Assembly (NCBI RefSeq): GCF_022045235.1
Contig: NW_027266343.1
Location: 27,900,001 to 27,964,000, forward strand
Direction: 5' to 3'
Source of the DNA: Haliotis cracherodii
Taxonomy: Eukaryota
Length of the DNA stretch: 64,000 nt
Below are positions 301-20,114 of this stretch, piece after piece; positions within the stretch are counted from its first letter, which is position 1, and every line of letters starts with the position of its first letter. Below the pieces are notes generated by a model. That model was not told the DNA's origin, searched no databases, and saw only the letters and a list, made by a program, of their open reading frames with translations. Both the position numbers and the translations under genes were made by a program.

Positions 301-2962
301 ATATATACAGTTATTTCATTGACAAAATCAAAGAACTTGTTTGCTATTATCAAATTTGTTGATGAACAATTTGTTAGTTGTGTTAATGTACTGATTAATA
401 CGTCGACTAATACTAGTAATAAGGATATAACAAATATTTTGAGGATAGAGCTTGTGATTATTTGGGTTGTTTAATCGTAATTTGCCAGTCAGAATCAATG
501 TAACTTTCTCAGATATATTCAGAGATGAAGATGATCCATGGATCACGACTATATGTTGCCACTGATTTTGTCATTAAAGTTCAATGCGGATTTGATTGAA
601 TACTTAATTCTCTATTGAAATTAGGCTTTCGAGTTTCGCAATACTTCTAATATCACTGCATCCTCAACCTACACAAATAGGTCTAGCATAATAAGCACTG
701 AAATTATGTCAGAGTTGCTGTCAGTGTCAGGCAGAACGGTCGACTATCGTGTAGGGGTGATGGTGCTTGTCCAAATAAAATCATACTGTTTATACTTACA
801 TGCTTTTCTTATGCAAAGTGATTTGTAGTTTGGTGCACAGTGACCCCTGTAGGCATGGTCATTAAGGCCAATAATGTACTAAAAGAATGCATTAATCTAA
901 ATTATTACTGCAATCATAAGCCTTCTTTATGTACCGGAAACAGCCCCCTGTTTCAAGGGACATAACTCCCAATGACAAAGTATTCCCGGAAAAACTTATT
1001 GTGTTTATTTAGCTGAAAAGGCGTCTGTTGTTACATTTATCATTGTGTACTGTTAATATTATGCAAGACTGAACTTGACTGGCCGTAATAGTCTGCACCT
1101 TTGCTCATTCACGAAGAATTTGAATAAGACTCGGAAGACTGAATGTCAAAATGGATTGTAATAATTATGAAATTTGACTCGTTTAGGATATAAGGTGGAT
1201 TATGAAACAACAAAATATCGTACTTCAGGTTAAAATATGTATGCCATTGTCAAACCATAACACATAATGAGGAGAACATTTGAAATATGGTAGAATATTT
1301 GACCTTTTGATCCTGATATGAAATCAGGCCGTCCGTTAGTGGGCGTGGCTTATGTTTTTTCACGGATTATGGAAACAAGAATGCCAAAAATAATTGCTTC
1401 AAGTGCCACAGAATTATTTTTTGTGCGTGATCTTAAAAAATATTTTTGAAGTAGTAATATTTTGGAATATTCAAATGTTTTTCATTTTAATTTCTTTGAA
1501 GTTATACAGAAATTGGCATATACACTTACGGATTGGCACGAAGAAAGAATAACACGAAACATATGCTACAAAAAACAACAAGAAAATGAAATAAATTACC
1601 GAGATGTCTGTAGTTTTTATTGGCCTCATTGGAAAGAAACGTAACACAGAACTTGGTGATCAATGTAATAAAAACGTCTGCCTCTGCATTATAACGACAG
1701 CAGCTAAAACACACAATTGTTGTAAAAATATGTTAATCATGCCAATATATATGTATAACAAAGATTTTGATGACCGATCATGTTACAATCTGGGTTGATT
1801 TATCATAACGTGCCTGTCAGCATCACTCTAACTTTCACGCCAAGACAAATGTTTCTGAAGTGCAGTTTTAATTGGCTATGGCTTTCAACTCGTACCACGC
1901 ACGAGACTCATCAAGCCATATCTGATAAACGGACGTTTGTTATATTGTGGCTGAGGGTTTGTGCTGTGCTTTTTCTCTCTGTATATGGCCTAGTATATAT
2001 AACTTAATAATTACCTCAAACATAACCGCATTGTTATATTTTAAAATTCATCAGAATCTTCGATGAACTCTTACCTGTCGTAAATTATGTGTCAGCTTTT
2101 GGAGATAAAGGGGTTTCCAGTTAGAGCTGGCTTGGTAGCTGAAGAAGTAACGGCACTAAATAAGATTTGGAACAGAGCGATAAGTAATGTTTGTCTTTGG
2201 GTAGTTGTGTTTCAGATTTACAGTATCTGTGTTCATGAGGAAATATTTGACAATAACAAACCGTGAACCTATCAGCAGCTTTACTGGAGGTGACACCTTG
2301 TGTGCATTATTATTTAAACTCGATATGGTGCTCTACGTGGTAAATGACATTGTTCGTGCCTGACTACACACAGGCAACACAGTTGGATTACGGATCCTAT
2401 AATAGAACATGGAGTCACCTCCTAGCCCAAACCTATATAAGTGTTTAATAGCTCTCTTCTGATTTTATTGAGTAGAGGTGTTTAATTTACCTTTCAGAGT
2501 ATTGGCTGTTGAGCTAGCTGGTTTTGTAGATAGTTGACACATGACTCAGGGTTGTAGCTGTATGACAGACAATGTTTCAGTCCTGGTGAGATGCAATCAG
2601 TTTCCCGATACATGTACATGTGTATAGCTCACGTGTCTCACTGTCTCAACTATTTGTATAATACGAACATATCATTATTATCTACAGTGGTTGAAGAAAT
2701 ATACTTAGAAAGAAACGATACTAAATGAAATAGTTCTGCCATTCTATCTCGATTTTTAATGGCCTCTTATACATAGACATGTTGCAATCGGAATGCTACT
2801 TTGTGTATCGCGTATGATATTATGGAACGTTCACGTATGATAACAATTTATCCACTGAGTTGGCACCGTGCAATCACCAGCAGCAGATTTCCTGGTTGTA
2901 ACCAAGGAGACATGTTCACCAGGGACTGACTATTTGTTGTAGATCATACATACGGCAACACC

Positions 2963-4976
2963 ATGTCAAAGGGTGCAGTAGCAGTTATCGACAAGAAGGA
3001 TATGACGTCATTAAAATCCCTAAACAAACCGCTTCAGCTGGTTAAAGAGCTCCTGACAGTGACACTCCTGCTCCTGGGCTACCCTGAGAAGGAGGCTGAG
3101 GTAGGGTAAGGCCCAAAACGTAACACAGTGATGGGGGATGGGAGGTGTGTGTGTGTGCGTGCTTGCGTTCGTGCATGCGTGCGCGTGTGTGTGTGTGTTT
3201 GGGGGGGGGGGGGGGGGGGATAAGGTATTCTGACATTAGAGACAGAGAGCTGTTTCAGTTTCACCCAGGTGCTTTGGTGGTAAAATATGAAATACCTGCA
3301 TACCAAATACCCTTACTTATTATAAGCATATTATAATACCTGCAAACAAAATACCCTTACTTATTATAAGCATATTATAAGCATTCCATACCTTGCACAC
3401 ACCGATTACGTCCATGTGATCTATCAAAAAAAAGTGGGTCAATGGTTTCAATAGCCAGATGTCTTAAGAAATACAATATGACCAAAATATTATGACATAA
3501 ACTGCATTTAACCTTTTGGCAATTTAGATTTGGGCGGTTTTGATTCACTGTAATGACTGATAAGATTTTGGCGCTGTCTGGTAGTCTAGTGGTTAAAGAC
3601 ACCAGTTCGATTTCCCATATTGGCAGAATGGGTAGAAGCCAATTTCTGGTGTCCCCCGCCGTGATATTCCTGCAATTTTGAACTTGATACACAGCCTAAC
3701 ACTGGGCATAAATGTGTGCTTTAAATGATATTTGTCCCTCTAATTAATGTTGTAAACGGGAATTGTTGCAGAATCACTTCAACAAACTTCAACATATCTT
3801 AACTTGACGGGGATTGTTCTGAGCCATGATTGGCCGTTTCCCATGTCATTATAATTATGATTTATGTATTATTGGTTTTACACCAGAACTATTACATATG
3901 CCGTCGTGTCTTGGCTGCCCCGGGGAAGGATGGTCTGCAACAGCAGATGATGAACAAGGACGCCAGCTCCATCCCTCCTGACACAGTGGCTAAAGTCAGG
4001 GCTAAGCTGCAAGAGCACTCAGTGGAGAGGACTAAAAATGCGTCCTTAGAATCAGTCGGGCTATACACTTGGGTAAGTGACCAGTTGGCTATACACGTGG
4101 GTAAGTGACCAGTTGGCTATGCACTTGGGTAAGTGACCAGCTGGCTATACACTTGGGTAAGTGACCAGCTGGCTATACACTTGGGTAAGTGACCAGCTGG
4201 CTATACACTTGGGTAAGTGACCAGCTGGCTATACACTTGGGTAAGTGACCAGCTGGCTATACACTTGGGTAAGTGACCAGCTGGCTATACACTTGGGTAA
4301 GTGACTAGTTGGCTGTACACTTGTGTAAGTGACCAGTTGGCTATACACTTGGGTAAGTGACCAGTTGGCTATACACGTGGGTAAGTGACCAGTTGGATAT
4401 ACACGTGGGTAAGTGACCAGTTGGCTATACATGTGGGTAAGTGACCAGTTGGCTATACACGTGGGTAAGTGACCAGGAAAATGCATCGGTTATCGTTTTT
4501 GTCACAGATGCATCAAATATCGAAATGACCTTAACATGTCTACCATAAATCTTCACTTCACAAAGCTTTACTGAGGCCTTAAATGTTGTAACCTTCATCA
4601 AACAACATTAGCGTAAGACCCTCTTTGAAATCATCATAGAAAGAGCAAGCTCGGTTGTACCTCAAAGTTATGAAATGTAAACACAAAAGCCTGGAGCTGC
4701 TGGAAAATTGCTCGACATTAAGGAAAAGTTGACCATTGGAAAGTTGAAGTCATCTTTCTTGTCATACAGTCTTGTGGGGTGTTTTAGGCGTCCAACAAGT
4801 CAGACTAAGTGATATTTCACAGTAATGGCAGAGCTTATGAGGTTTGCGTACGATACTCTGACAATTGTAATCCTGACAATCCATATATAACATTTCTAAT
4901 AATTGTTCACATGATGATGAAGTATTTTGCATCATGTTTTTACTTTTTATTGCAGGCAAGCAAAATGACAGCCTAA
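2963..4976 (+). CDS. Stand-alone dynein-stalk MTBD-like microprotein, copy 1 (114 aa; exons 2963-3100, 3887-4072, 4956-4976)
   Basis: GT/AG phase-0 junctions at the same positions in all three copies. Protein: MSKGAVAVIDKKDMTSLKSLNKPLQLVKELLTVTLLLLGYPEKEAE/NYYICRRVLAAPGKDGLQQQMMNKDASSIPPDTVAKVRAKLQEHSVERTKNASLESVGLYTW/ASKMTA*. It matches the dynein MTBD pattern DIxEIKSxxxPPxxVK..LLG..D..IP..S.A..GL..W. This copy lacks the TATA box and non-coding first exon seen in copies 2 and 3. Confidence 0.72.
3580..3690 (+). mobile_element. Degenerate short tRNA-derived SINE (same family as 33151-33290)
   Basis: ggtagtctagtggttaaag (A-box-like), gttcgatttcc (B-box-like), and the core aagcc(a/c)atttctggtgtcccccg shared with the 33151 copy. 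Confidence 0.6.
4061..4476 (+). repeat. 28-bp minisatellite of reiterated exon end plus 5' splice site (15 units)
   Basis: Unit ctatacac(g/t)tgg|gtaagtgaccag(t/c)tgg, with GT positions from 4073 to 4465 at exact 28-nt spacing. Confidence 0.95.
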
Positions 4977-5049
4977 GTTATAAATGACTGGACATTAGCA
5001 CACGGAATTCGACGAGAACCTGAAGCAAAGACCAAACAGCTTACGAGCA

Positions 5050-5575
5050 TCGGATACACAGAACCAATCAGCCGACCACCATCTGATACACAGCTCCAAT
5101 AAGTTTACCACCATCTGATACACAGCTCCAATCAGCCTACCACCATCTGATACACAGAACTTATCAACCTACCACCATCTGATAAACACAACCAATCAGC
5201 CGACCACCATCTGATACACAGAACCAATCAGCCTACCACCATCTGATACACTGAACCAATCAGCCTACCACCATCTGATACACAGATCCAATCAGCCGAC
5301 CGCCATCTGATACACAGATCCAATCAGCCTACCGCCATCTGATACACAGAACCAATCAGCCGACCACCATCTGATACACAAAACCAATCAGCCGACCACC
5401 ATTTGATACACAGAACTTATCAACCTACCACCATCTGATACACAGATCCAATCAGCCGACCGCCATCTGATACACAGAACCAATCAGCCGACCACCATCT
5501 GATACACAAAACCAATCAGCCGACCACCATCTGATACACAGAACTTATCAACCTACCACCATCTGATACACAGAG
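5050..5575 (+). repeat. 32-bp minisatellite 3' of the copy 1 stop codon, CCAATCAG-rich
   Basis: Unit atctgatacacagaaccaatcagcc(t/g)accacc, about 16 copies. Confidence 0.9.
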
Positions 5576-6584
5576 TCAGCCTTCTAACCAAAAGGATTGT
5601 AATACATTAATGTAAGCCCCAGCACTGGGTTTGCCAACAGTTTACTTGTTGGACAAAGTAGGAACGAATGCTCTGAATGTTTCTGTTTGTTTACAATATA
5701 AGGAAGACCAAATTAAATAAAACAACTCGTGCTTGTGTCCATTTGTTCGTATGTTTCCCCTTCAGCTGAAGGCCCCCGTATGAAAAGGTCCGTGATACGG
5801 GTCATACAGAGCGTGGCCTAATGCTTCTACAACAAGGAACAAGTTGGCCAATCAAGTGTTCAATCAAGGGCTCAATGAAGTAAGCACAGTCCACCTGTTA
5901 AGTTTGTTCACTGTCTACTTCAGAAGATGATCAAATATGGAAGGATCTCAGTTTATTAAAAGAACATTTCTACATTTCCAATCATACGGCGATAGCTGAG
6001 TTAAAAGAATCGTGCAATCGTCTACATCAGCTAAACATAATAATTAAATAACAAGAATGTGACAACCTTCTTTGGCTTTATAAATTATTTATTTTATTCA
6101 GAGACACGAGGTATAACAAGGACAATAAAACCTTTCAAAAAAGGAAGAAACAACAACATTCTCGTAAAACTACAGCCGTAAAAGACACCATGCTTCGGAT
6201 AAAATAAATAAAATTTGACCTATTTAAATTGGGGTTGTCTATGAAGTCGTGCATGCCTGGACAGGTGGATATCATATGCTGAATTGTTGAGAAGACAGTC
6301 ACGGAAGGGGTGTTCTTGACAAACAAAGTTCTTATGTCATAAAGCAAGCCTTAACGTACGTAATGGGTTTTCATGTGATGAAACCCTTGTGAAAACGTTC
6401 ATTGAGCATTTAGTAGACAAACCTTGATGTTCCAATGATTTGAACACCCTAGTTCTCACATTAATCATCGTTTGCGTTTTTTGAAAACAGAAATATAATT
6501 TCATTGAAAGAATGATACAGTAACTCATTTTGAACATTCACATGTCAAATAGTTTCCCAGGACAAGGTTTTGTTTTAAAGTATG

Positions 6585-6910
6585 AATGCTTCACGTAGAG
6601 GTACTGCTGTGGTTTTGTCCTGAGGTCTGTATGTCTCACGCAAAGGTACTGCTGTGGTTTTGTCGAGATGCTTCACGTACTGTTTCGGTTTTGTCGTAAA
6701 GTCCTTATGCTTCACGTACAGGTACTGTTTCGGTTTTGTCGTAAAGTCAGTATGCTTCACGTACAGGTACTGCTGTGGTTTTGTCGTGAAGTCTATGCTT
6801 CACGTACAGGTACTGCTGTGGTTTTGTCGTGAAGTCTGTATGCTTCATGAACAGCAACTGCTGTGGTTTTGTCTGAAGTTTGTATGCTTCACGTGCAGGT
6901 ACTGCTGTTG
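6585..6910 (+). repeat. 45-bp minisatellite
   Basis: Unit tatgcttcacgtacaggtactgctgtggttttgtcgtgaagtctg, about 7 copies, with a paralogous array at 14120-14675. Confidence 0.9.
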
Positions 6911-8550
6911 TTTTAGTTTCAACCAGAGAAATGCAGATCGTTCTATGACAACATGACATGTTCACAAACATGTAGCAATATCTGAAGCATACCATTTGAG
7001 CTAAGCAACATTTGCTCCTCAAATTAATTGAATAGTTGACATACGTATTATCATATTTATTTATTCAACAATTAGTTAAATATTGTCATAACAAAAACTA
7101 CCAATACATTATGTTTGGTTATTTCAACAATGAAAGTAACTTACATTATTATGCTGTTTCGTATAAACAATATCATACAAATAAAATATAAAAAATATAG
7201 TGTATAAGTGTATGCATATATCTTGGTAGTAACAGCTTTGACACAAGGTAACAGTATTCAGTTACATTGTTACACATGTCAGTCTGTCATATTGCATACT
7301 TCATTTAAAATAATATCATACATCTTGCAAACAATGTTGTGTTGAACATTGTCTGTTGCTGAGCAAGGGGTTCCTGAAAGAGATAAATACAGTGTGGCAA
7401 CATCAAGATCATCTTGGTAACAGTCATGTCTTCAACTCATGACTTATACGTAAGAGTGGAAATAGCGGTAAAAATAATATGAATGGGGCACTGAAAAGCA
7501 GCGATGAAAGTAACAAAAGAGGCATACATGTGTAAATGCAGTAACTTAATTTAAAAAATAGCAGCTACATTAAGAGTTAATACAACTTGTAACCCCATTT
7601 ATACCATCCTCTTTGAACTTATGTCAAACATTACCAATTCAACAAAAGGAAAATAGAAGCCTTCTCTCGATTTAAAACCCGTTAAAGAACATATAAGTTT
7701 ACAGTTTAACCATATTTCTCATGTGGTCTAAAAACATAAACTCATACGTACAACATTAGGACATGGTGATCGAGAATTAAAACAAGATTATTTAGAACAG
7801 GTTCAAACGAAGAGGTAAGTCTGTTGTTGAGGGCGGTCTAAGTAGTGATAACTTGTGCACAAAACGGTTCACATAAATAATTCAAACGAAGCACGTGTCT
7901 ACATCCCACAAATGGGTAAAACGAATGATTTGTCAAAAGCAAACGCAACTGGAGAATGGGGGAACAGGTGAACGGGGGACAGGGACTTGTCGCCCATAAA
8001 GAAGTATTGGCCTATAACAATATCTAAACAGATCAACAGTCCCACTGAAGGTCCACAGCGTGTGCGTGTCGAGCACACAACTTTGTTTACGAATCTCTAT
8101 AATTAGTAGTGTACGTGGTAAATGACATTATTCGTGCCTGACTACACCTGGCTGCCAATCTCGGATTAATTTGCATGGTTTCCAGAACTGCGACGTGCTC
8201 CTGCAATATAATATGACGTCATCGTCTTACTCGTGGCTATAGCAGTGTTGATTGTTCTAGAATGCCTTGACTGAGACTGAATGCAAGGCAGGACAGGTGA
8301 GAACACTCATGTGTACATTCTCCTTAACGATACTGTAATCAGCAGCCTTACTGGAGGTGACACCTTGTGTGTGTCGTGCACACGGCATCATTATTTAAAC
8401 TCGATATGGTGCTCTACGTGGTAAATGACATTGTTCGTGCCTGACTACACACAGGCAACACAGTTGGATTACGGATCCTATAATAGAACATGGAGTCACC
8501 TCCTAGCCCAAGCCTATATAAGTGTTGAATGTTCTCGAGTGTTGGGTCAG

Positions 8551-8611
8551 TATATAAAGCAGGACAGCGGCGACTTAAACACATACATTTACATCACCAG
8601 GACAGGTGAGT
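8551..8611 (+). promoter_or_regulatory. TATA box and short non-coding first exon of MTBD-like copy 2
   Basis: TATATAAA at 8551-8558, then ...caggacag|gtgagt with a donor at 8606. The acceptor ttgttgtag lies about 20 nt before the ATG at 9178. Copy 3 has the same arrangement. Confidence 0.65.
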
Positions 8612-9177
8612 ACGCTAACATGTTCATTTTCTTTAACAATACTGTAATGCTTTAATAGCCATCTTCTGATTTTATTGAGTGGAGGTGTTTAATTTACCTT
8701 TCAGAGTATTGGCTGTTGAGCTAGCTGGTTTTGTAGATAGTTGACACATGACTCAGGGTTGTAGCTGTATGACAGACAATGTTTCAGTCCTGGTGAGATG
8801 CAATCAGTTTCCCGATACATGTACATGTGTATAGCTCACGTGTCTCACTGTCTCAACTATTTGTATAATACGAACATATCATTATTATCTACAGTGGTTG
8901 AAGAAATATTCTTGGAAAGAAACGATACTAAATGAAATAGTTCTGCCATTCTATCTCGTTTTTTAATGGACTCTTACGAATAGACATGTTGCAATCGGAA
9001 TGCTACTTTGTGTATCGCGTATGATATTATGGAACGTTCAAGTTGTCTTATATGATAACAATTTATCCACTGAGTTGGCACCGTGCAATCACCAGCAGCA
9101 GATTTCATGGTAGTAACCAAGGAAACATGTTCACCACGGACTGACTATTTGTTGTAGATCATACAGAAAGCAACACC

Positions 9178-12100
9178 ATGTCAAAGGGCGGAAATACAGT
9201 TATCGACAAGAATGATATCACGGTAATAAAATCCTTAAGTAACCCGCCTCAGCTGGTCAAAGAACTCCTGACAGTGACACTCCTGCTGCTGGGCTATCCG
9301 GAGAAGGAGGCTGAGGTATTTTCCGTCTCATCGGGGTGTCTTGTCATCCAAAAAAGTCTCGACAGCAATATGGCCTGTTGACTACAATTTGTCTACAGTC
9401 AAACCTCCTTGCGACGTGGTCATGCGTTGCTCCTTTGTGTATCAGACCAACAGCTTGTTCTTGCTGTTGAAGCGTTAATCTACCCATGCTCATGTCCTAC
9501 AGTTTGAGTGTGAATGAACGGTACATCGTTCTTTGTATATCAATATCTGTGTTATTTTGGCATGCTGTTAGTGCAGCCAGAGTTTCACTTACAACTCACG
9601 TTCCCTTGATCTGGGTACCGTAGCACGTGCATTACTCAGCATATTGTTTTGGTTGTGTTTGGGAGATTGACTCTCAACCATTTTGTATCACTATTCTGGC
9701 TTTGGACCCGACGTGTCCAAATTTAAGTTTGGTAACGTTTCTACGTCAGTTTACATCAACAGTTATGCTATTTATGTCCATTATCCACAATCTTAGTAAC
9801 TGAAATGTTCATTCCTCGATCAGTTGTGAATACATATCATGTCAAGTTGACCAGTTTACAAGATGTAAAGAATGCACTTATATTATACCAAAATTCTTTG
9901 AACCATGACCACGCCCCCCCCCCCCCCCCATGGCCGTTTCCCATATCATTATAATTATGATTTATATGTTATTGGTTTTACACCAGAACTATAACATATG
10001 CCGTCGTGTCTTGGCTGCCCCGGGGAAGGATGGTCTGCAACAGCAGATGATGAACAAGGACGCCAGCTCCATCCCTCCTGACACAGTGGCCAAAGTCAGG
10101 GCTAAGCTGCAAGAGTACTCAGTGGAAAAGGCAATGTGCGTGTGCTGTGCTTCAGTCGGGCTATACACGTGGGTAAGTGACCAGTTGGCTTTACACGTGG
10201 GTAAGTGACTAGTTGGCTATACACGTGGGTAAGTGACCAGTTGGCTATACATGTGGGTAAGTGACCAGCTGGCTATACACGTGGGTAAGTCACCAGTTGG
10301 CCATACACGTTAGTAAGTGACCAGCTGGCTATACACGTGGGTAAGTAACGAGTTGGTTGTACACGTGGGTAAGTGACCAGTTGGCCATACACGTTAGTAA
10401 GTGACCAGCTGGCTATACACGTGGGTAAGTGACGAGTTGATTGTACACATGGGAAAGTGACCAGCTGGCTATACACGTGGGTAAGTGACCAGTTGGCTAT
10501 ACACGTGGGTAAGTAACGAGTAGGTTGTACACATGGGAAAGTGACCAGTTGCCTATACACGTGGGTAAGTGACCAGTTGGCTATACATGTGGATAAGTGA
10601 CCAGTTGGTTGTACACGTGGGTAAGTGACCAGCTGGCTGTACACGTGGGTAAGTGACGACTTGGTTGTACACGTGGGTAAGTGACCAGCTGGCTATACAC
10701 ATGGGTAAGTGACCAGGTGGCTATATAAGTGGGTAAATAACGAGTTGGTTGTACACGTGGGTAAGTGACCAGTTGGCTATACACGTGGGTAATTGACCAG
10801 CTGGCTGTACACATGGGAAAGTGACCAGTTGGCTATACACGTGGGTAAGTGACCAGTTGGCTATACACGTGGGTAAGTGACCAGTTGGCTATACATGTGG
10901 ATAAGTGACCAGTTGGTTGTACACGTGGGTAAGTGACCAGCTGGCTATACACATGGGTAAGTGACGACTTGGTTGTACACGTGGGTAAGTGACCAGCTGG
11001 CTATACACGTGGGTAAGTGACGACTTGGTTGTACACGTGGGTAAGTGACCAGATGGCTATACACATGGGTAAGTGACCAGGTGGCTATATAAGTGGGTAA
11101 ATAACGAGTTGGTTGTACACGTGGGTAAGTGACCAGTTGGCTATACACGTGGGTAATTGACTAGCTGGCTGTACACATGGGAAAGTGACCAGTTGGCTAT
11201 ACACGTGGGTAAGTGACCAGTTGGCTATACACGTGGGTAAGTGACCAGTTGGCTATACACGTGGGTAAGTGACCAGCTGGCTATACACGTGGGTAAGTGA
11301 CCAGTTGGCTATACACGTTAGTAAGTGAGCAGTTGGCTATACAACTGGGTAAGTGACCAGTTGGCTATACAAGTGGGTAAGTAACGAGTTGGTTGTACAC
11401 GTGGGTAAGTGACCAGTTGGCTATACACGTGGGTAATTGACCAGCTGGCTATACACGTGGGTAAGTGACCAGTTGGTTGTACACGTGGGTAAGTGACCAG
11501 CTGGCTATACACGTGGGTAAGTGACCAGTTGGCTATACACGTGGGTAAGTGACCAGTTGGCTATACACGTGGGTAAGTGACCAGCTGGCTATACATGTGG
11601 GTAAGTGACCAGTTGGTTGTACACGTGGGTAATTGACCAGTTGGCTATACACGTAGGTAAGTGACCAGTTGGTTGTACACGTGGGTAATTGACCAGTTGG
11701 CTATACACTTGGGTAAGTGACCAGCTGGCTATACACGTGGGTAAGTAACGAGTTGGTTGTACACGTGGGTAAGTGACCAGCTGGCTGTACACGTGGGTAA
11801 GTGACGACTTGGTTGTACACGTGGGTAAGTGACCAGTTAAAGCTGTGTTGACAAACAATGTATAGGCTGAAGTTTACATAGGTATTGAAAATAAATAAAA
11901 GCTACAAAAAACACTTTTGATATTCATAAGAAATATCGGCTAAAAGCAGGGTAGATTGTGCGATTCTGACTATATCATAAGCATGTATTTATGAAGCACT
12001 TATCAAATAGTGATGATAGCAGGTGTCCGTGAAAGGTTGAGTGTATCATGCCCCACCGGTGGCGTCCGTCACAAACACATACAAAGGCAAGTCAACTGTT

Positions 12101-12641
12101 CACCTAAAAAGACGAGAACATATGGTACGTGTTAAAATAGGAAATTGCATCCGTCATCGTTTTTGTCACAGATGTGTCAAATTTGGAAATGACCTCAACA
12201 TGTCTACCATAAATCTTCACTTCACAAAGCTTTACTGAGGCCTTAAATGTTGTAACCTTCATCAAACAACATTAGCGTAAGACCCTCTTTGAAATCATCA
12301 TAGAAAGAGCAAGCTCGGTTGTACCTCAAAGTTATGAAATGTAAACACAAAAGCCTGGAGCTGCTGGAATATTCCTCGAAATAAAGGAAAAGTTGACCGT
12401 TGGAAAGTTGAAGTCATCTTTCTTGTCATACAGTCTTGTGGGGTGTTTTGGGCGTCCAACAAGTCAGACTAAGTGATATTTCTAAGTAATGACAGAGCTA
12501 ATGACGTTTGCTTACGACACACTGACAATTGTAATCATAACAATCCATATATAACATTAGTTAATATCTGTTCACATGATGATGAAGTATTTTGCATCAT
12601 GTTTATACTTTTTATTGCAGGCAAGCAAAATGACAGCCTAA
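9178..12641 (+). CDS. Stand-alone dynein-stalk MTBD-like microprotein, copy 2 (114 aa; exons 9178-9315, 9987-10172, 12621-12641)
   Basis: Same exon lengths (138/186/21 nt) and splice sites as the other copies. Protein: MSKGGNTVIDKNDITVIKSLSNPPQLVKELLTVTLLLLGYPEKEAE/NYNICRRVLAAPGK...LQEYSVEKAMCVCCASVGLYTW/ASKMTA*. Confidence 0.8.
10161..11837 (+). repeat. 28-bp splice-donor minisatellite (60 units)
   Basis: First donor GT at 10173, last at 11825. The difference is 1652 = 59 x 28, so there is no net indel. Confidence 0.95.
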
Positions 12642-12713
12642 GTTATAAATGACTGGACATTAGCACACGGAATTCTACGAGAACCTGAAGCAAAGACCAA
12701 ACAGCTTACGAGC

Positions 12714-13220
12714 ATCTGATACACAGAACCAATCAGCCGACCACCATCTGATACACAGCTCCAAGCAGCCTACCGCCATCTGATACACAGCACCAATCAG
12801 CCTACCGCCATCTGACACACAGAACCAATCAGCCTACCACCATCTGAAACACAGAACCAGTCAGCCTACCACCATCTGATACACAGAACCAATCAGCCTA
12901 CCACCATCTGATACACAGCTCCAAGCAGCCTACCGCCATCTGATACACAGCACCAAGCAGCCTACCGCCATCTGACACACAGAACCAATCAGCCTACCGC
13001 CATCTGAAACACAGAACCAATCAGCCTACCACCATCTGATACACAGATCCAATATGCCTACCACCATCTGATACACAGAACCATACACAGAACCAATCAG
13101 CCTACCGCCATCTGATACACAGAACCAATCAGCCGACCACCATCTGATACACAGATCCAATCAGCCGACCACCATCTGATACACAGATCCAATATGCCTA
13201 CCACCATCTGATACACAGAG
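12714..13220 (+). repeat. 32-bp CCAATCAG-containing minisatellite 3' of the copy 2 stop codon
   Basis: Same unit as 5050-5575. Confidence 0.9.
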
Positions 13221-14119
13221 TCAGCCTTCCAAAAGGATTGTAATACATTAATGTAAGCCCCAGCACTGGGTTTGCCAACAGTTTACTTGTTGGACAAAGT
13301 AGGAACGAATGCTCTGAATGTTTCTGTTTGTTTACAATATAAGGAAGACCAAATTAAATAAAACAACTCGTGCTTGTGTCCATTTGTTCGTATGTTTCCC
13401 CTTCAGCTGAAGGCCCCCGTATGAAAAGGTCCGTGATACGGGTCATACAGAGCGTGGCCTAATGCTTCTACAACAAGGAACAAGTTGGCCAATCAAGTGT
13501 TCAATCAAGGGCTCAATGAAGTAAGCACAGTCCACCTGTTAAGTTTGTTCACTGTCTACTTCAGAAGATGATCAAATATGGAAGGATCTCAGTTTATTAA
13601 AAGAACATTTCTACATTTCCAATCATACGGCGATAGCTGAGTTAAAAGAATCGTGCAATCGTCTACATCAGCTAAACATAATAATTAAATAACAAGAATG
13701 TGACAACCTTCTTTGGCTTTATAAATTATTTATTTTATTCAGAGATACGAGGGAAAACAAGGACTATTAAACCCTTCAAAAAGGAAGAAACAACAACATT
13801 CTCGTAAAACTACAGCCGTAAAAGACACCATGCTTCGGATAAAATAAATAAAATTTGACCTATTTAAATTGGGGTTGTCTATGAAGTCGTGCATGCCTGG
13901 ACAGGTGGATATCATATGCTGAATTGTTGAGAAGACAGTCACGAAAGGGGTGTTCTTGACAAACAAAGTTCTTATGTCATCAAGGAAGCCTAAACGTACG
14001 TAATGGGTATTCAGGGGATGAAACCCATGTGAAAACGTTCTTTGATTATTTAGTATAAAAACCTTGATGTTGATGATTTTGAACACCCCAGTTCTCATAT
14101 AAAAGATCGTTTGCATTTT

Positions 14120-14675
14120 AGAGGTACTTCTGTGGTCTCGTCGATAAGTCTGTATGCTTCACGTAGAGGTACTTCTGTGGTCTCGTCGATAAGTCTGTAT
14201 GCTTCACGTAGAGGTACTTCTGTGGTCTCGTCGATAAGTCTGTATGCTTCACGTAGAGGTACTTCTGTGGTTTCGTCGATAAGTCTGTATGCATCACGTA
14301 GAGGTACTGCTGTGGTTTTGTTTTGAAGTTTGTATGCTTCACGTAGATGTACTGCTATGGTTTTGTCATGAAGTCTGTATGCTTCACGTACAGGTACTGC
14401 TGTGGTTTTGTCGTGAAGTCTTTATGCTTCACGTAGAGGTACTGCTGTGGTTGTGTCGTGAAGTTTGTATGCTTCACGTACAGGTACTGCTGTGGTTTTG
14501 TCTGAAGTTTGTATGCTTCACATAGAGGTACTGCTGTGGTTTTGTCGTGGAGTCTGTATGCTTCACGTACAGGTACTGCTGTGGTTTTGTCGCGAAGTTT
14601 GTATGCTTCACGTACAGGTACTGCTGTGGTTTTGTCGTGGAGTCTGTATGCTTCACGTACAGGTACTGCTGTGGT
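14120..14675 (+). repeat. 45-bp minisatellite
   Basis: Same unit as 6585-6910, about 12 copies. It explains the periodic ORFs at 14111-14883. Confidence 0.9.
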
Positions 14676-16088
14676 AACTTACATTATTATGCTGTTTCGT
14701 ATAAACAATATCATACAAATAAAAAATAAAAAATATAGTGTATTAGTATATACATATATCTTGGTAGTAACAGCTTTGACACAAGGTAACAGTATTCAGT
14801 TACATTGTTACACATGTCAGTCTGTCATATTGCATACTTCACTTAAAATAATATCATACATCTTGCAAACAATGTTGTGTTGAACATTGTCTGTTACTGA
14901 GCAAGGGGTTCCTGAAAGAGATAAATACAGTGTGGCAACATCAAGATCATCTTGGTAACAGTCATGTCTTCAACTCATGACTTATACGTGAGAGTTGAAA
15001 TAGCGGTAAAATAATATGAATGGGGCACTGAAAATCAGCGATGAAAGTAACAAAAGAGGCATACATGTGTAAATGCAGTAACTTAATTTAAAAAATAGCA
15101 GCTACATTAAGAGTTAATACAACTTGTAACCCCATTTATACCATCCTCTTTGAACTTATGTCAAACATTACCAATTCAACAAAAGGAAAATAGAAGCCTT
15201 CTCTCGATTTAAAACCCGTTAAAGAACATATAAGTTTACAGTTTAACCATATTTCTCATGTGGTCTAAAAAACATAAACTCATACGTACAACATTAGGAC
15301 ATGGTGATCGAGAAATAAAACAAGATTATTTAGAACAGGTTCAAACGAAGAGGTAAGTCTGTTGTTGAGGGCGGTCTAAGTAGTGATAACTTGTGCACAA
15401 AACGGTTCACATAAATATTTCAAACGAAGCACGTGTCTACATCCCACAAATGGGTAAAACGAATGATTTGTCAAAAGCAAACGCAACTGGAGAATGGGGG
15501 AACAGGTGAACGGGGGACAGGGACTTGTCGCCCATAAAGAAGTATTGGCCTATAACAATATCTAAACAGATCAACAGTCCCACTGAAGGTCCACAGCGTG
15601 TGCGTGTCGAGCACACAACTTTGTTTACGAATCTCTATAATTAGTAGTGTACGTGGTAAATGACATTATTCGTGCCTGACTACACCTGGCTGCCAATCTC
15701 GGATTAATTTGCATGGTTTCCAGAACTGCGACGTGCTCCTGCAATATAACATGACGTCATCGTCTTACTCGTGGCTATAGCAGTGTTGATTGTTCTAGAA
15801 TGCCTTGACTGAGACTGAATGCAAGGCAGGACAGGTGAGAACACTCATGTGTACATTCTCCTTAACGATACTGTAATCAGCAGCCTTACTGGAGGTGACA
15901 CCTTGTGTGTGTCGTGCACACGGCATTATTATTTAAACTCGATATGGTGCTCTACGTGGTAAATGACATTGTTCGTGCCTGACTACACACAGGCAACACA
16001 GTTGGATTACGGATCCTATAATAGAACATGGAGTCACCTCCTAGCCCAAGCCTATATAAGTGTTGAATGTTCTCGAGTGTTGGGTCAG

Positions 16089-16149
16089 TATATAAAGCAG
16101 GACAGCGGCGACTTAAACACATCCATTTACATCACCAGGACAGGTGAGT
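16089..16149 (+). promoter_or_regulatory. TATA box and non-coding first exon of MTBD-like copy 3
   Basis: TATATAAA at 16089-16096 and donor cag|gtgagt at 16144, near-identical to 8551-8611. Confidence 0.65.
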
Positions 16150-16715
16150 ACGCTAACATGTTCATTTTCTTTAACAATACTGTAATGCTTTAATAGCCAT
16201 CTTCTGATTTTATTGAGTAGAGGTGTTTAATTTACCTTTCAGAGTATTGGCTGTTGAGCTAGCTGGTTTTGTAGATAGTTGACACATGACTCAGGGTTGT
16301 AGCTGTATGACAGACAATGTTTCAGTCCTGGTGAGATGCAATCAGTTTCCCGATACATGTACATGTGTATAGCTCACGTGTCTCACTGTCTCAACTATTT
16401 GTATAATACGAACATATCATTATTATCTACAGTGATTGAAGAAATATATTTGGAAAGAAACGATACTAAATGAAATAGTTCTGCCATTCTATCTCGTTTT
16501 TTAATGGACTCTTACGAATAGACATGTTGCAATCGGAATGCTACTTTGTGTATCGCGTGTGATATTATGGAACGTTCACGTTGTCTTACATGATAACAAT
16601 TTATCCACTGAGTTGGCACCGTGCAATCACCAATAGCAGATTTCATGGTTGTAACCAAGGAGACATGTACACCACGGACTGACTATTTGTTGTAGATCAT
16701 ACAGAAGGCAACACC

Positions 16716-19700
16716 ATGTCAAAGGGCGGAAATACAGTTATCGACAAGAATGATATCACGGAAATAAAATCCCTAAGTAACCCGCCTCAGCTGGTCAAAG
16801 AACTCCTGACAGTGACACTCCTGCTGCTGGGCTACCCTGAGAAGGAGGCTGAGGTCAGTTCCGTAACACCATGGTGAGAGGGGAGGGGGGGGAGCGTTAG
16901 TAGTGAGGTAGTGAGGTCGGTCATACGCGAGGCAGAGATGCGGGTCGGCCGACTAATGGTGGGTGACTGCAGATGACAATCACATTGATTATATGGGGTG
17001 GACAGTTGGATTTCTGGCGGCTGGCGAAGTATGTGTGTGTATTTGGGAGAGGAGGGGGTAGGGGGTAGAATGTTCTTATAACTGCTTGAAAATAAATCTC
17101 ATCATCTAAAGAAGTCTATCGTTCGTCAACAGCCAAACCTCCCTGGTCATCCGTTGCTCCTTGATGTCTGTATCAGAGCAACAGCTTGTTCTTGCTGTTA
17201 AAGCGTAATCTTCCCATGCCCCTGTCCAACCGTTTGATTGTAAATGAACAGTACATCTTTATTTTTATATCCATATCTATGTAGGTTGGCATGCTGTTAG
17301 TGCAGCCAAGTTTCACTTAAAACTCACGTTCCCTTGATCTGGGTACCGTAGCACGTGCATTACTCAGCAAATTGTTTGGGCCATTGACTCTCAACCATTT
17401 TGTATCACTATTCTGGCTTTGGACCCGACGTGTCCAAATTTCAGTTTGGTAACGTTTCTTCATCAGTTTACATCAAAAGTTATGCTATTTATGTCCATTA
17501 TCCACAATCTTAGTAATTGAAAAGTTCATTCCTCGATCAGTGTTGAATACATATCATGTCAAGTTGACCAGTTTTCTGTCATTCTGAAGAAGACTGAACA
17601 CTGGGTGCTTGCCATACAAGGTGTAAACAATGGTCTTTTATTATTTCAAAATGCTTTAGTATGCTGCTATTTTAAATGTTCTGTTATAAAACCACCTACT
17701 TATATATCGCCTAAATATCACATCAACCGCCCCAGAGATGGGTATCAGTGAACGAACAGATTATACGACTCTTCAAATGGGAAAATGGACGTCACATTAT
17801 TTGAAGACATCTACATTTGGAAATGATGAAGGGTTGGGCGAAAAGCAATGATGGTAGATCCCTGCATTCAGGAAGACTGGTAGATTGAACTTTCTTGAAA
17901 TAGTACATATTAAAGATTCAAGTTAGTACAGCTAAACACCATTGATAATGGCTGATGTTAATACTGATGCAAGTGCATTTACCCAAACACGATGGATACT
18001 AGAGTGTATCCTTTCTAAACAAAATAAGGGGTACACCACAAAGGCAATATTTTCAAGAGAAGAATTGTAAAAGATGTCATAATGCAGGCTGCAGGAAACT
18101 GCACATATTCATCTTCGTGGCGACTCCCCATGATTGGCCGTTGCCCATGTCATTATTATTATGATTTCTGTATTATTGGTTTTACACCAGAACTATAACA
18201 CGTGCCGTCGTGTCGTGGCTGACACAGGGAAGGATGGTCTGCAGCAGCAGATGATGAACAAGGACGCCAGCTCCATCCCTCCTGACACAGTGGCCAAAGT
18301 CAGGGCTAAGCTGCAAGAGCACTCGGTGGAAAGGGCTAAGAAAGTGTCCTTAGCTTCAGCCGGACTATACACGTGGGTAAGTGACTATTTGGCTATACAT
18401 GTGGGTAAGTGACCAGTTGGCTATACACTTGGGTAAGTGACCAGTTGGCTATGCACATGGGTAAGTGACTAGTTGTCTATGCACGTGGGTAAGTGACCAG
18501 TTGGCTATACACGTGGGTAAGTGACCAGTTGGCTATACACGTGGGTAAGTGACTAGTTGGCTATGCACGTGGGTAAGTGACCAGTTGGCTATACACTTGG
18601 GTAAGTGACCAGTTGGCTATACACGTCGGTAAGTGACCAGTTGGCTATACATGTGGGTAAGTGACCAGTTGGCTATACACGTGGGTAAGTGACTAGTTGG
18701 CTATACACGTGGGTAAGTGACCAGTTGGCTATACACGTGGGTAAGTGACCAGTTGGCTATACACGTGGGTAAGTGACCAGTTGGCTATACATGTGGGTAA
18801 GTGACTAGTTGGCTATACACGTGGGTAAGTGACTAGTTGGCTATACACGTGGGTAAGTGACCAGTTGGCTATACACGTGGGTAAGTTACCAGTTGGTTCA
18901 ACAGTATGGTCTGTGTGGTGCTATACTTGTGGGTAAGTGACTGGTTCAACAGTATGATCTGTGTGGTGGAATACTTGTGGGTAAGTGACTGGTTCAACAG
19001 TGTGGTCTGTGTGGTGCTATACTTGTGGGTAAGTGACTGGTTCAACAGTGTGGTCTGTGTGGTGTATTACTTGTGGGTAGGTGACTAGTTCAACAGTGTG
19101 GTCAGGGTGGTGCAATACTTGTGGGTAAGTGGCCGGTTCAACAGTGTGGTCTGTGTGGTGCAAAACTTGTTGGTATGTGACTGGTTCAACAGTGCTGTTT
19201 GGGCGGTGCAATACTTGTGTGTGACCTGTTCAACAGTGTGGTCAGGGTGGTGCAATGCTTGTGGGTAGGTGACTGGTTCAACAGTGTTGTCGGGGTGGTG
19301 CAATGCTTGTGGGTAGGTGACTGGTTCAACAGTGTTGTCGGGGTGGTGCAATGCTTGTTGGTAAGTGACTGGGTCAACAGTGTGGTCTGTGTGGTGCAAT
19401 ACTTGTGGGTAAGTGACCGGTTCAACAGTGTTGTCGGGGTGGTGCAATGCTTGTTGGTAAGTGACTGGGTCAACAGTGTGGTCAGGGTGGTGCAATACTT
19501 GTGGGTAAGTGACCGGTTCAAAAGTGTTGTCGGGGTGGTGCAATGCTTGTGGGTAAGTGACCGGTTCAACAGTGTGGTCTGTGTGGTGCAATACTTGTGG
19601 GTGGGTGACTGGTTCAACAGTGTGGTCTGTGTGGTGCAATACTTGTGGGTAGGTGACTAGTTCAAATGTGGTAAGGGTGGTGCTATACTTGTTGATATGT

Positions 19701-20114
19701 TACATGAGTGCGAGACACATGAATATGGAATATTAGTGTTTTAAGTGATAGCTTACGTTTGTGTAGAGAATGTTAATATTTTCAACATACAGTAATCTAC
19801 GTTGCATTATTTTATTTATTATAACCATTGGTCATTATAAGCACATATACAGCATACAGACAGGACCAAAACACAGTTCATTATATCCGCCAATTCATTA
19901 TAACCGTGTTCAATATAAACATAGTTTACTGTACATTGTATAACTGTTAGTGTATTGGGCATTGATGACTGGGTATCTGGAAAGGTCTTAGTTTGAAGTA
20001 TAGCCAAGTGTACAGGTTTTCAACCAATCTAAAGGGTTAAAGGGTAATGTTTCTAATATAAACGTTGTACATCACATGTGTGTTTTATTGCAGGCAGCCA
20101 AGATGACAGCGTAA
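16716..20114 (+). CDS. Stand-alone dynein-stalk MTBD-like microprotein, copy 3 (114 aa; exons 16716-16853, 18191-18376, 20094-20114)
   Basis: Protein: MSKGGNTVIDKNDITEIKSLSNPPQLVKELLTVTLLLLGYPEKEAE/NYNTCRRVVADTGKDGLQQQMMNKDASSIPPDTVAKVRAKLQEHSVERAKKVSLASAGLYTW/AAKMTA*. The last exon keeps its acceptor, frame and stop although its flanks are diverged from copies 1 and 2, which supports the gene model. This copy is closest to the dynein consensus (DITEIKS..NPP; KKVS.A.AGL..W). Confidence 0.82.
18365..18895 (+). repeat. 28-bp splice-donor minisatellite (19 units)
   Basis: Donor GT from 18377 to 18881, a difference of 18 x 28. Confidence 0.95.
18896..19700 (+). repeat. 48-bp minisatellite retaining the tgg|gtaagtgac donor core
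   Basis: Unit tacttgtgggtaagtgactggttcaacagtgtggtctgtgtggtgcaa, about 16 copies. It accounts for the periodic ORFs at 18906-19660. Confidence 0.9.

Follow-up and report, generated by a model that had tools for sequence, protein, structure and literature searches.

A 64-kb window of the Haliotis cracherodii genome (the whole stretch of 64,000 nucleotides analyzed here, on contig NW_027266343.1) carries three copies of one small gene, arranged head to tail on the + strand, whose predicted products correspond to the globular tip of the dynein stalk, its microtubule-binding domain (MTBD). We are highly confident of the structural and evolutionary part of this statement, namely that these genes encode a free MTBD fold and belong to a motor-less mollusc family. 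The best explanation we can offer for them, advanced with moderate confidence, is that they are free-standing MTBD genes whose products would act as ATP-independent microtubule binders or competitors. The kind of fold is already known, as are the gene models, which RefSeq holds as automatic NCBI predictions named 'dynein heavy chain-like'. Newly recognized here are stand-alone homologues of 113-121 residues in scallops and oyster and, as far as we could find, an MTBD-like domain at the C-terminus of mollusc KY/ltd-1-like proteins, of which no description was encountered. The literature searched, which was incomplete, likewise yielded no description of a natural motor-less MTBD, of its mollusc-wide presence or of its fusion to KY proteins, all of which are apparently new.

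Three genes encoding a dynein stalk tip

Each gene consists of coding exons of 46, 62 and 6 codons followed by a stop, giving 114 codons with no internal stops, and all introns are GT-AG and in phase 0 (Table 1). The initial annotation had described three genes of identical exon structure, each encoding 114 residues and ending six residues past a conserved Trp; coding sequences, intron phases and splice sites confirm this organization, the stop codon lies six residues beyond the Trp of helix H6 in all three genes, and the dynein-like motif quoted there is present in the sequence. Its view that the genes are hidden does not stand, as RefSeq already annotates genes 2 and 3 as 'dynein heavy chain-like'. 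The spliced product of gene 3 is identical, residue for residue over all 114 positions, to XP_071090926.1 (P0005), and that of gene 2 to XP_071090949.1 (P0008), whose model begins 12 residues earlier; full-length analyses of both genes were run on these database proteins. No counterpart of the gene 1 product was found among annotated proteins. Related RefSeq entries exist in H. rubra (XP_046576571.1, 113 residues) and H. rufescens (LOC124111702, two isoforms). A six-frame search of the 1.18-Gb genome returned no further copies of exon 2 at E < 1e-25 besides those of genes 1-3. The window sequence has a G+C content of about 40% and numerous minisatellites, and the only other substantial reading frames in its 1-21 kb interval are repeat-derived.

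Profile searches place these proteins at the dynein stalk tip. With Pfam MT (PF12777), whose cut-off is 24, the H. rubra orthologue reaches 29.3 bits; the match spans profile positions 97-207, the part that describes the globular tip. A family profile built from four members and compared with PDB returned 36 distinct sequences at E < 1, all of them dynein heavy chains matched at the MTBD, with DNAH10 as the best match (E 3.8e-6). An exon-2 profile searched against 1.84 billion representative proteins recovered only H. rubra XP_046576571.1 and three spurious low-complexity matches.

Structure prediction is in agreement with these searches. The AlphaFold2 model of the small protein is all-helical, with a predicted local distance difference test score (pLDDT) of 81.6, and about the first 40 matches listed by Foldseek for this model are dynein MTBDs, the best of them with template modeling (TM) scores of 0.69-0.77. 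With VIA-align, the model superposes on the mouse dynein stalk 5ayh (residues 3288-3399) over 105 residues at 2.0 Å (Z 13.9), and the top ten matches are all dynein MTBD structures (Z 10.4-13.9, 2.0-3.0 Å). The superposition proposed in the initial annotation thus came out in favor of the dynein fold. Two non-dynein axoneme/conoid proteins, 7jtk chain C (residues 460-581) and 9ya2 chain L, also superpose on the model, with Z values of 10.0 and 7.5; such values are within reach of a common helical-bundle arrangement and provide only a lead to other MTBD-like folds.

The small proteins share with dynein MTBDs (Pfam MT; PDB 3err, 5ayh, 6rzb, 6rza) the H1-H6 pattern, a length of about 105 residues and the signature residues. 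They differ from them by two small indels, by their intron positions and by forming a separate clade. Helix H1 begins at residue 11, so that about 10 residues precede it, and the chain ends six residues past the H6 Trp; these limits leave no room for a coiled coil or a motor. Compared with a dynein heavy chain, the window proteins thus lack CC1/CC2 and the AAA+ ring or linker, and hence the registry switch. Taken together, profiles, PDB matches, predicted fold and chain limits make a solid case for homology between the small proteins and the dynein stalk tip, whose fold they are predicted to share; this upholds both the assignment to the globular tip covered by Pfam MT and the absence of coiled coil and motor put forward from the sequence alone.

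Kinship with KY/ltd-1-like proteins and range in molluscs

Weak genomic matches to exon 2 lead to KY-like genes on two contigs, here called C16 and C34. These KY-like loci of H. cracherodii (Table 1) encode a transglutaminase-like core, then KY Ig-like domains (PF01841, PF23265), and continue with charged repetitive exons, a helical exon whose last part resembles H1-H2, and a 62-codon exon that closes on Trp. The genome contains at least 13 of these 62-codon MTBD-like exons. Annotated proteins with the full architecture, which go under KY or 'lim and transglutaminase domain protein ltd-1-like', were identified in H. asinina (P0010), H. rubra, H. cracherodii (P0016), Saccostrea (P0012), Mactra (P0015) and Liolophura (P0013); in these KY-type proteins the order is transglutaminase-like core, KY Ig-like domains, linker, CC1-like helix and C-terminal MTBD-like domain, and the chains end about 10-20 residues beyond the Trp.

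Two phase-0 introns, one lying 8 residues past Leu-Leu-Gly and the other directly after the H6 Trp, are shared by the window genes and the KY-like loci L036, L037 and L039/L038, whereas the introns of abalone dynein genes fall elsewhere in the MTBD region. The small proteins and the KY-type C-terminal domains further share a 100-column gapless alignment, a Gly-Lys-Asp/Glu insertion and an end soon after the Trp. The window proteins differ from KY/ltd-1-like proteins in lacking the transglutaminase-like core, the KY Ig-like domains, the linker and the CC1-like helix, and they keep several dynein-like residues that the KY domains have lost. The C16 locus shows tandem repetition of the MTBD-like exon pair along with the charged exons ahead of it, and in the C34 KY-like gene the homologue of the window genes' intron 1 contains a minisatellite of about 3 kb (C34:18778000-18781000).

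When the whole-protein KY profile was compared with PDB, dynein MTBDs were matched at E 8.6e-7, the matches to DNAH2 and DNAH6 including part of CC1, and the papain-like domain of FAP246 (7n6g chain 6E / 7sqc) at E 7e-12. In the AlphaFold model of the Saccostrea protein P0012, the helix pattern of the small proteins recurs at residues 490-596, preceded by a long helix. Foldseek with the whole P0012 model also gave FAP246 as the top match, in a listing made up mostly of Ig-like domains and with little on the C-terminal domain. FAP246 is a protein of the Chlamydomonas C1b central apparatus (bioRxiv 10.1101/2021.06.16.448709), and these sequence and model matches hint at a ciliary role for KY-type proteins. 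No Pfam MT domain was called on the KY-like proteins, one of which reached a sub-threshold 14.6 bits, and with a single KY-type exon the PDB search was empty and the ESM Atlas look-up gave only noise.

A C-terminal MTBD-like domain is absent from the vertebrate KY and hillarin-like proteins retrieved. The W180 domains of hillarin, considered as the MTBD-like part, were ruled out because this C-terminal domain is missing from the hillarin-like proteins retrieved. In the RefSeq model P0009, a KY-like protein of H. cracherodii on contig C1, the H1-H2 exon is followed by an unrelated 38-residue tail; a matching 62-codon exon lies at C1:57806181-57806363 and is contained in the H. asinina and H. 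rubra orthologues. The P0009 model probably omits the last exons.

Small proteins of similar size also occur in bivalves, where Pecten maximus XP_033763218.1 (119 residues), Argopecten irradians XP_069114549.1 (121 residues) and Ostrea edulis XP_048763978.1 (113 residues) match the abalone profile at E 1e-10 to 4e-16. The best matches of the Pecten protein in the H. cracherodii genome are the window genes. Like the abalone proteins, these bivalve 'dynein heavy chain-like' proteins start just before H1 and have no stalk or motor; identity is 32-39%, and those of scallops are without the Gly-Lys-Asp-Gly insertion and extend about 17 residues beyond the Trp. The like size and limits of the bivalve homologues indicate retention since the gastropod-bivalve split. 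Two further open reading frames (ORFs), P0033 and P0034, read into the intron at the first shared intron position.

Profile comparisons and phylogeny agree on the position of the family. A hidden Markov model of five abalone small proteins matched six KY-like proteins at 28-38 bits, gapless over 100 positions. In hhalign comparisons, small proteins and KY domains aligned without gaps at 99.1% (E 7e-19), small proteins and six abalone dynein MTBDs at 97.9% (E 4e-13) with three indels, and KY domains and dyneins at 97.6% (E 3e-12). A maximum-likelihood tree was computed from about 110 columns for 8 small proteins, 11 KY domains and 10 abalone dynein MTBDs, leaving out some five abalone dynein genes whose H1 exon was not located. 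It splits the dyneins from the small proteins plus KY domains with support 99/98, and recovers the KY domains (98/97) and the abalone small proteins (99/96) as clades; the small proteins of scallops join those of abalone at 83/86, and the placement of the oyster protein is unstable. When the abalone small proteins are constrained to fall within the KY clade, the log-likelihood drops by about 13.5 units (approximately unbiased [AU] test, p 0.047-0.055), and a recent origin of the abalone genes from within abalone KY genes is on this marginal result unlikely. On this value, either the free or the fused form may have come first. On the sequence evidence there is thus a mollusc lineage of motor-less MTBD-like domains, long since diverged from dynein heavy chains, that exists in two forms, free and KY-fused. 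The dynein-tip homology first proposed is retained, and the nearest kin of the window proteins are now this mollusc clade, including the KY C-terminal domains, rather than dynein heavy chains.

Promoters, duplication and minisatellites of the tandem array

As the initial annotation had stated for two of the genes, genes 2 and 3 are each preceded by a TATA-like box with a non-coding first exon (1b) behind it, and the 114-residue form is predicted to use exon 1b. Both genes also have an ATG-bearing alternative first exon (1a), which that annotation did not report; splicing of gene 2 exon 1a to position 9158 adds 12 N-terminal residues and yields a 126-residue isoform. The 5′ flank of gene 1 is 94.8-96.7% identical to those of the other copies (blastn), and its upstream block has lost, by deletion, the TATA-proximal part and both first exons. 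The conserved Pro-Pro is changed to Pro-Leu in this gene, which retains an intact reading frame, has no recognizable first exon or promoter block, and may be silent.

The triplet is the product of tandem duplication. Pairwise dS between the paralogues is 0.15-0.24, with ratios of nonsynonymous to synonymous divergence (dN/dS) of 0.44-0.50. In trees gene 2 clusters with the single annotated H. rufescens protein, which makes the duplication older than that species split. The 5′ flanks of genes 2 and 3 (8000-9177 and 15540-16715) are 98.6% identical over 1176 bp, and the non-coding flanks of adjoining copies, including 4977-8000 and 12642-15540, show 93-98.6% identity, exceeding that of the coding exons. 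Some introns show no similarity between copies, and intron 1 of gene 1 has nothing in common with that of gene 2. This mosaic of flanks, exons and introns suggests repeated unequal exchange or gene conversion with break points within the genes, perhaps by way of the minisatellite that fills the last intron of each copy.

The 28-nt unit of this minisatellite consists of the final 14 nt of exon 2 and the splice donor, so that genes 1, 2 and 3 contain 15, 60 and 19 tandem candidate donors, respectively. Read-through from the first unit meets a stop after 12 codons, and a shift by 28 nt alters the frame. Other repeats are found between the copies, with lengths that differ from copy to copy: a minisatellite with a 32-nt unit just past the stop of gene 1 (5031-5574) and gene 2 (12696-13219), and an intergenic one with a 45-nt unit at 6566-6914 and 14119-14675. 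A tRNA-like stretch at 3570-3650 in intron 1 of gene 1, missing in the other two copies, is probably a short interspersed nuclear element (SINE).

Table 1. Features of the three-gene array (window positions) and KY-like loci elsewhere in the H. cracherodii genome (contig:position)
Feature	Position	Strand	Remarks
Gene 1, truncated copy of upstream promoter block	2281-2445	+	compared with gene 2 and gene 3 blocks
Gene 1, coding exon 1	exon 2943-3100; CDS 2963-3100 (ATG 2963)	+	46 codons, H1-H2 of MTBD fold
Gene 1, coding exon 2	3887-4072	+	62 codons, phase 0 at both ends, H3 to H6 Trp
Gene 1, 28-nt minisatellite in last intron	4059-4476	+	14.9 units
Gene 1, coding exon 3	4956-4976	+	6 codons + stop
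Gene 2, alternative first exon 1a, ATG to donor	8281-8296	+	N-terminus of XP_071090949.1 fits join to 9158
Gene 2, TATA-like box (8552-8560) and non-coding first exon 1b	8552-8605, donor after 8605	+	sequence
Gene 2, coding exon 1	exon 9158-9315; CDS 9178-9315	+	ATG of 114-residue form at 9178
Gene 2, coding exon 2	9987-10172	+	62 codons
Gene 2, 28-nt minisatellite in last intron	10159-11838	+	60 units
Gene 2, coding exon 3	12621-12641	+	6 codons + stop
Gene 3, alternative first exon 1a, ATG to donor	15819-15834	+	homology with gene 2
Gene 3, TATA-like box and non-coding first exon 1b	16089-16143, donor after 16143	+	sequence
Gene 3, coding exon 1	exon 16696-16853; CDS 16716-16853 (ATG 16716)	+	residues 1-46 of XP_071090926.1
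Gene 3, coding exon 2	18191-18376	+	62 codons; residues 47-108 of XP_071090926.1
Gene 3, 28-nt minisatellite (18365-18896), then 48-nt array, in last intron	18365-19692	+	19 units; 16.8 units
Gene 3, coding exon 3	20094-20114	+	6 codons + stop; residues 109-114 of XP_071090926.1
KY-like loci L036, L037	C16:9192000-9211999		
KY-like loci L038, L039	C34:18768000-18787999		
Further KY-like locus L042	C34:20358000		
Further KY-like locus L040	C1:29094000		
Further KY-like locus L043	C1:57797000		

Possible function of a free stalk tip

In dynein, the MTBD is part of the heavy chain and its affinity is set by the AAA+ ring about 15 nm away. Cryo-electron microscopy points to a dynein tip that stays permanently primed for the microtubule, with H1 as the only part that follows stalk registry (PMC6629372). 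On that basis, a tip whose H1 is free would be expected to occupy the intradimer site of tubulin without control by ATP, and the small protein could be either a small microtubule-associated protein or a rival of dyneins or KY-type proteins for this site. Microtubule binding itself, argued from the predicted model and by analogy with dynein, is a more tentative proposition, to which we give slightly less than an even chance. Less likely again is the wider scenario in which free stalk tips have been kept since before the gastropod-bivalve split as ATP-independent competitors or tuners of dynein, and the same tip tethers KY-type proteins to microtubules.

Several observations weigh against the proposal of free MTBDs acting on microtubules. 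Pfam MT falls below its cut-off for the window proteins (19.7 bits, E 4.9e-4 for gene 3), does not match the 126-residue protein of gene 2, and gives at most 12.2 bits for single exons (E 0.09, one exon only); the profile check envisaged by the initial annotation gave dynein MTBDs alone in PDB and, on the Pfam side, a match above the cut-off for the H. rubra orthologue, not for the window proteins. The AlphaFold2 model was built on a four-sequence alignment, no family member in the protein collection stems from a run assembly, and nesting within the KY clade is disfavored only marginally, as noted above. The signal of selection is weak, with Fisher p values of 0.02-0.07 on few sites. Finally, the 26 positions that vary between the three paralogues, together with most of the 50 variable ones in the set of five abalone proteins, cluster in three regions: the N-terminal stretch with H1, helix H3, and H6 with the H5-H6 loop before it. 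In dynein these regions face tubulin; H2, H4 and H5 are nearly invariant among the abalone small proteins. One would not expect this where the ligand is tubulin, itself invariant; the pattern would suit a surface under relaxed constraint or one following a partner that changes.

This last observation is the starting point of the strongest alternative, a repurposed fold that serves some other, possibly fast-evolving partner, or that acts as a microProtein-type decoy for the partner of the KY/ltd-1-like C-terminal domain. We regard it as possible, if rather unlikely. Beyond the concentration of change on H1, H3 and H6 over nearly invariant core helices, it is favored by the rapid divergence of the family (67% identity between H. 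rubra and H. cracherodii, about 94% between H. rufescens and gene 2), by the fact that the nearest kin are domains of non-motor proteins, and by the loss from KY-type domains of several dynein-like residues that the small proteins keep. Against this, fold, length and hydrophobic core are those of the dynein MTBD, most of the abalone proteins carry a net positive charge (isoelectric points 7.7-9.4) that suits the acidic surface of tubulin, and no result indicates another partner. MicroProteins such as Id and LITTLE ZIPPER are single-domain decoys that act through transcription-factor dimerization domains. The window proteins resemble them in having one interaction domain and larger multi-domain relatives in the genome, but only this architecture fits, since the domain shared here is a cytoskeletal binding module.

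It is improbable that the genes are decaying, non-functional pieces left by partial duplication of a larger gene. The loss of the first exons and promoter block from gene 1, together with its Pro-Pro to Pro-Leu change, would agree with decay, as would dN/dS ratios that are not strongly under 1 and the fact that the genes are known here from genomic predictions alone; yet frames and splice sites are intact in the three paralogues and in three Haliotis species, scallops and oyster have homologues of like size and limits, and the core helices are invariant. Less probable still is that these are exons of a much larger dynein or KY-like gene with truncated short models: the metagenome-style ORF P0033, in which about 45 helical residues lie upstream of an H1-H2 exon like that of the small proteins, suggests that longer relatives may exist, but genomic DNA has an in-frame stop directly 5′ of the ATG, the last exon of all three genes reaches its stop after six codons, the DNA between the copies contains first exons and TATA-like boxes rather than coding exons, the 1-21 kb interval of the window contains no KY or AAA+ exon, and the RefSeq models of the family span 113-126 residues in three Haliotis species. 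The same stops, and the lack of an AAA+ exon, sustain the earlier claim that these are not exons of a dynein heavy chain.

Where proteins of about 114 residues automatically receive names like 'cytoplasmic dynein 2 heavy chain 1-like', a distinct family is masked. If the reading of these genes as free-standing, motor-less MTBDs is true, a part of a motor would have been captured by the unrelated KY/ltd-1-like family, itself of poorly understood function, a distant relative of which, FAP246, is located in the ciliary central apparatus of Chlamydomonas. A natural free-standing MTBD would, in turn, provide a ready-made test of how the domain behaves without regulation, and abalones may possess an endogenous competitor for the dynein site on microtubules.

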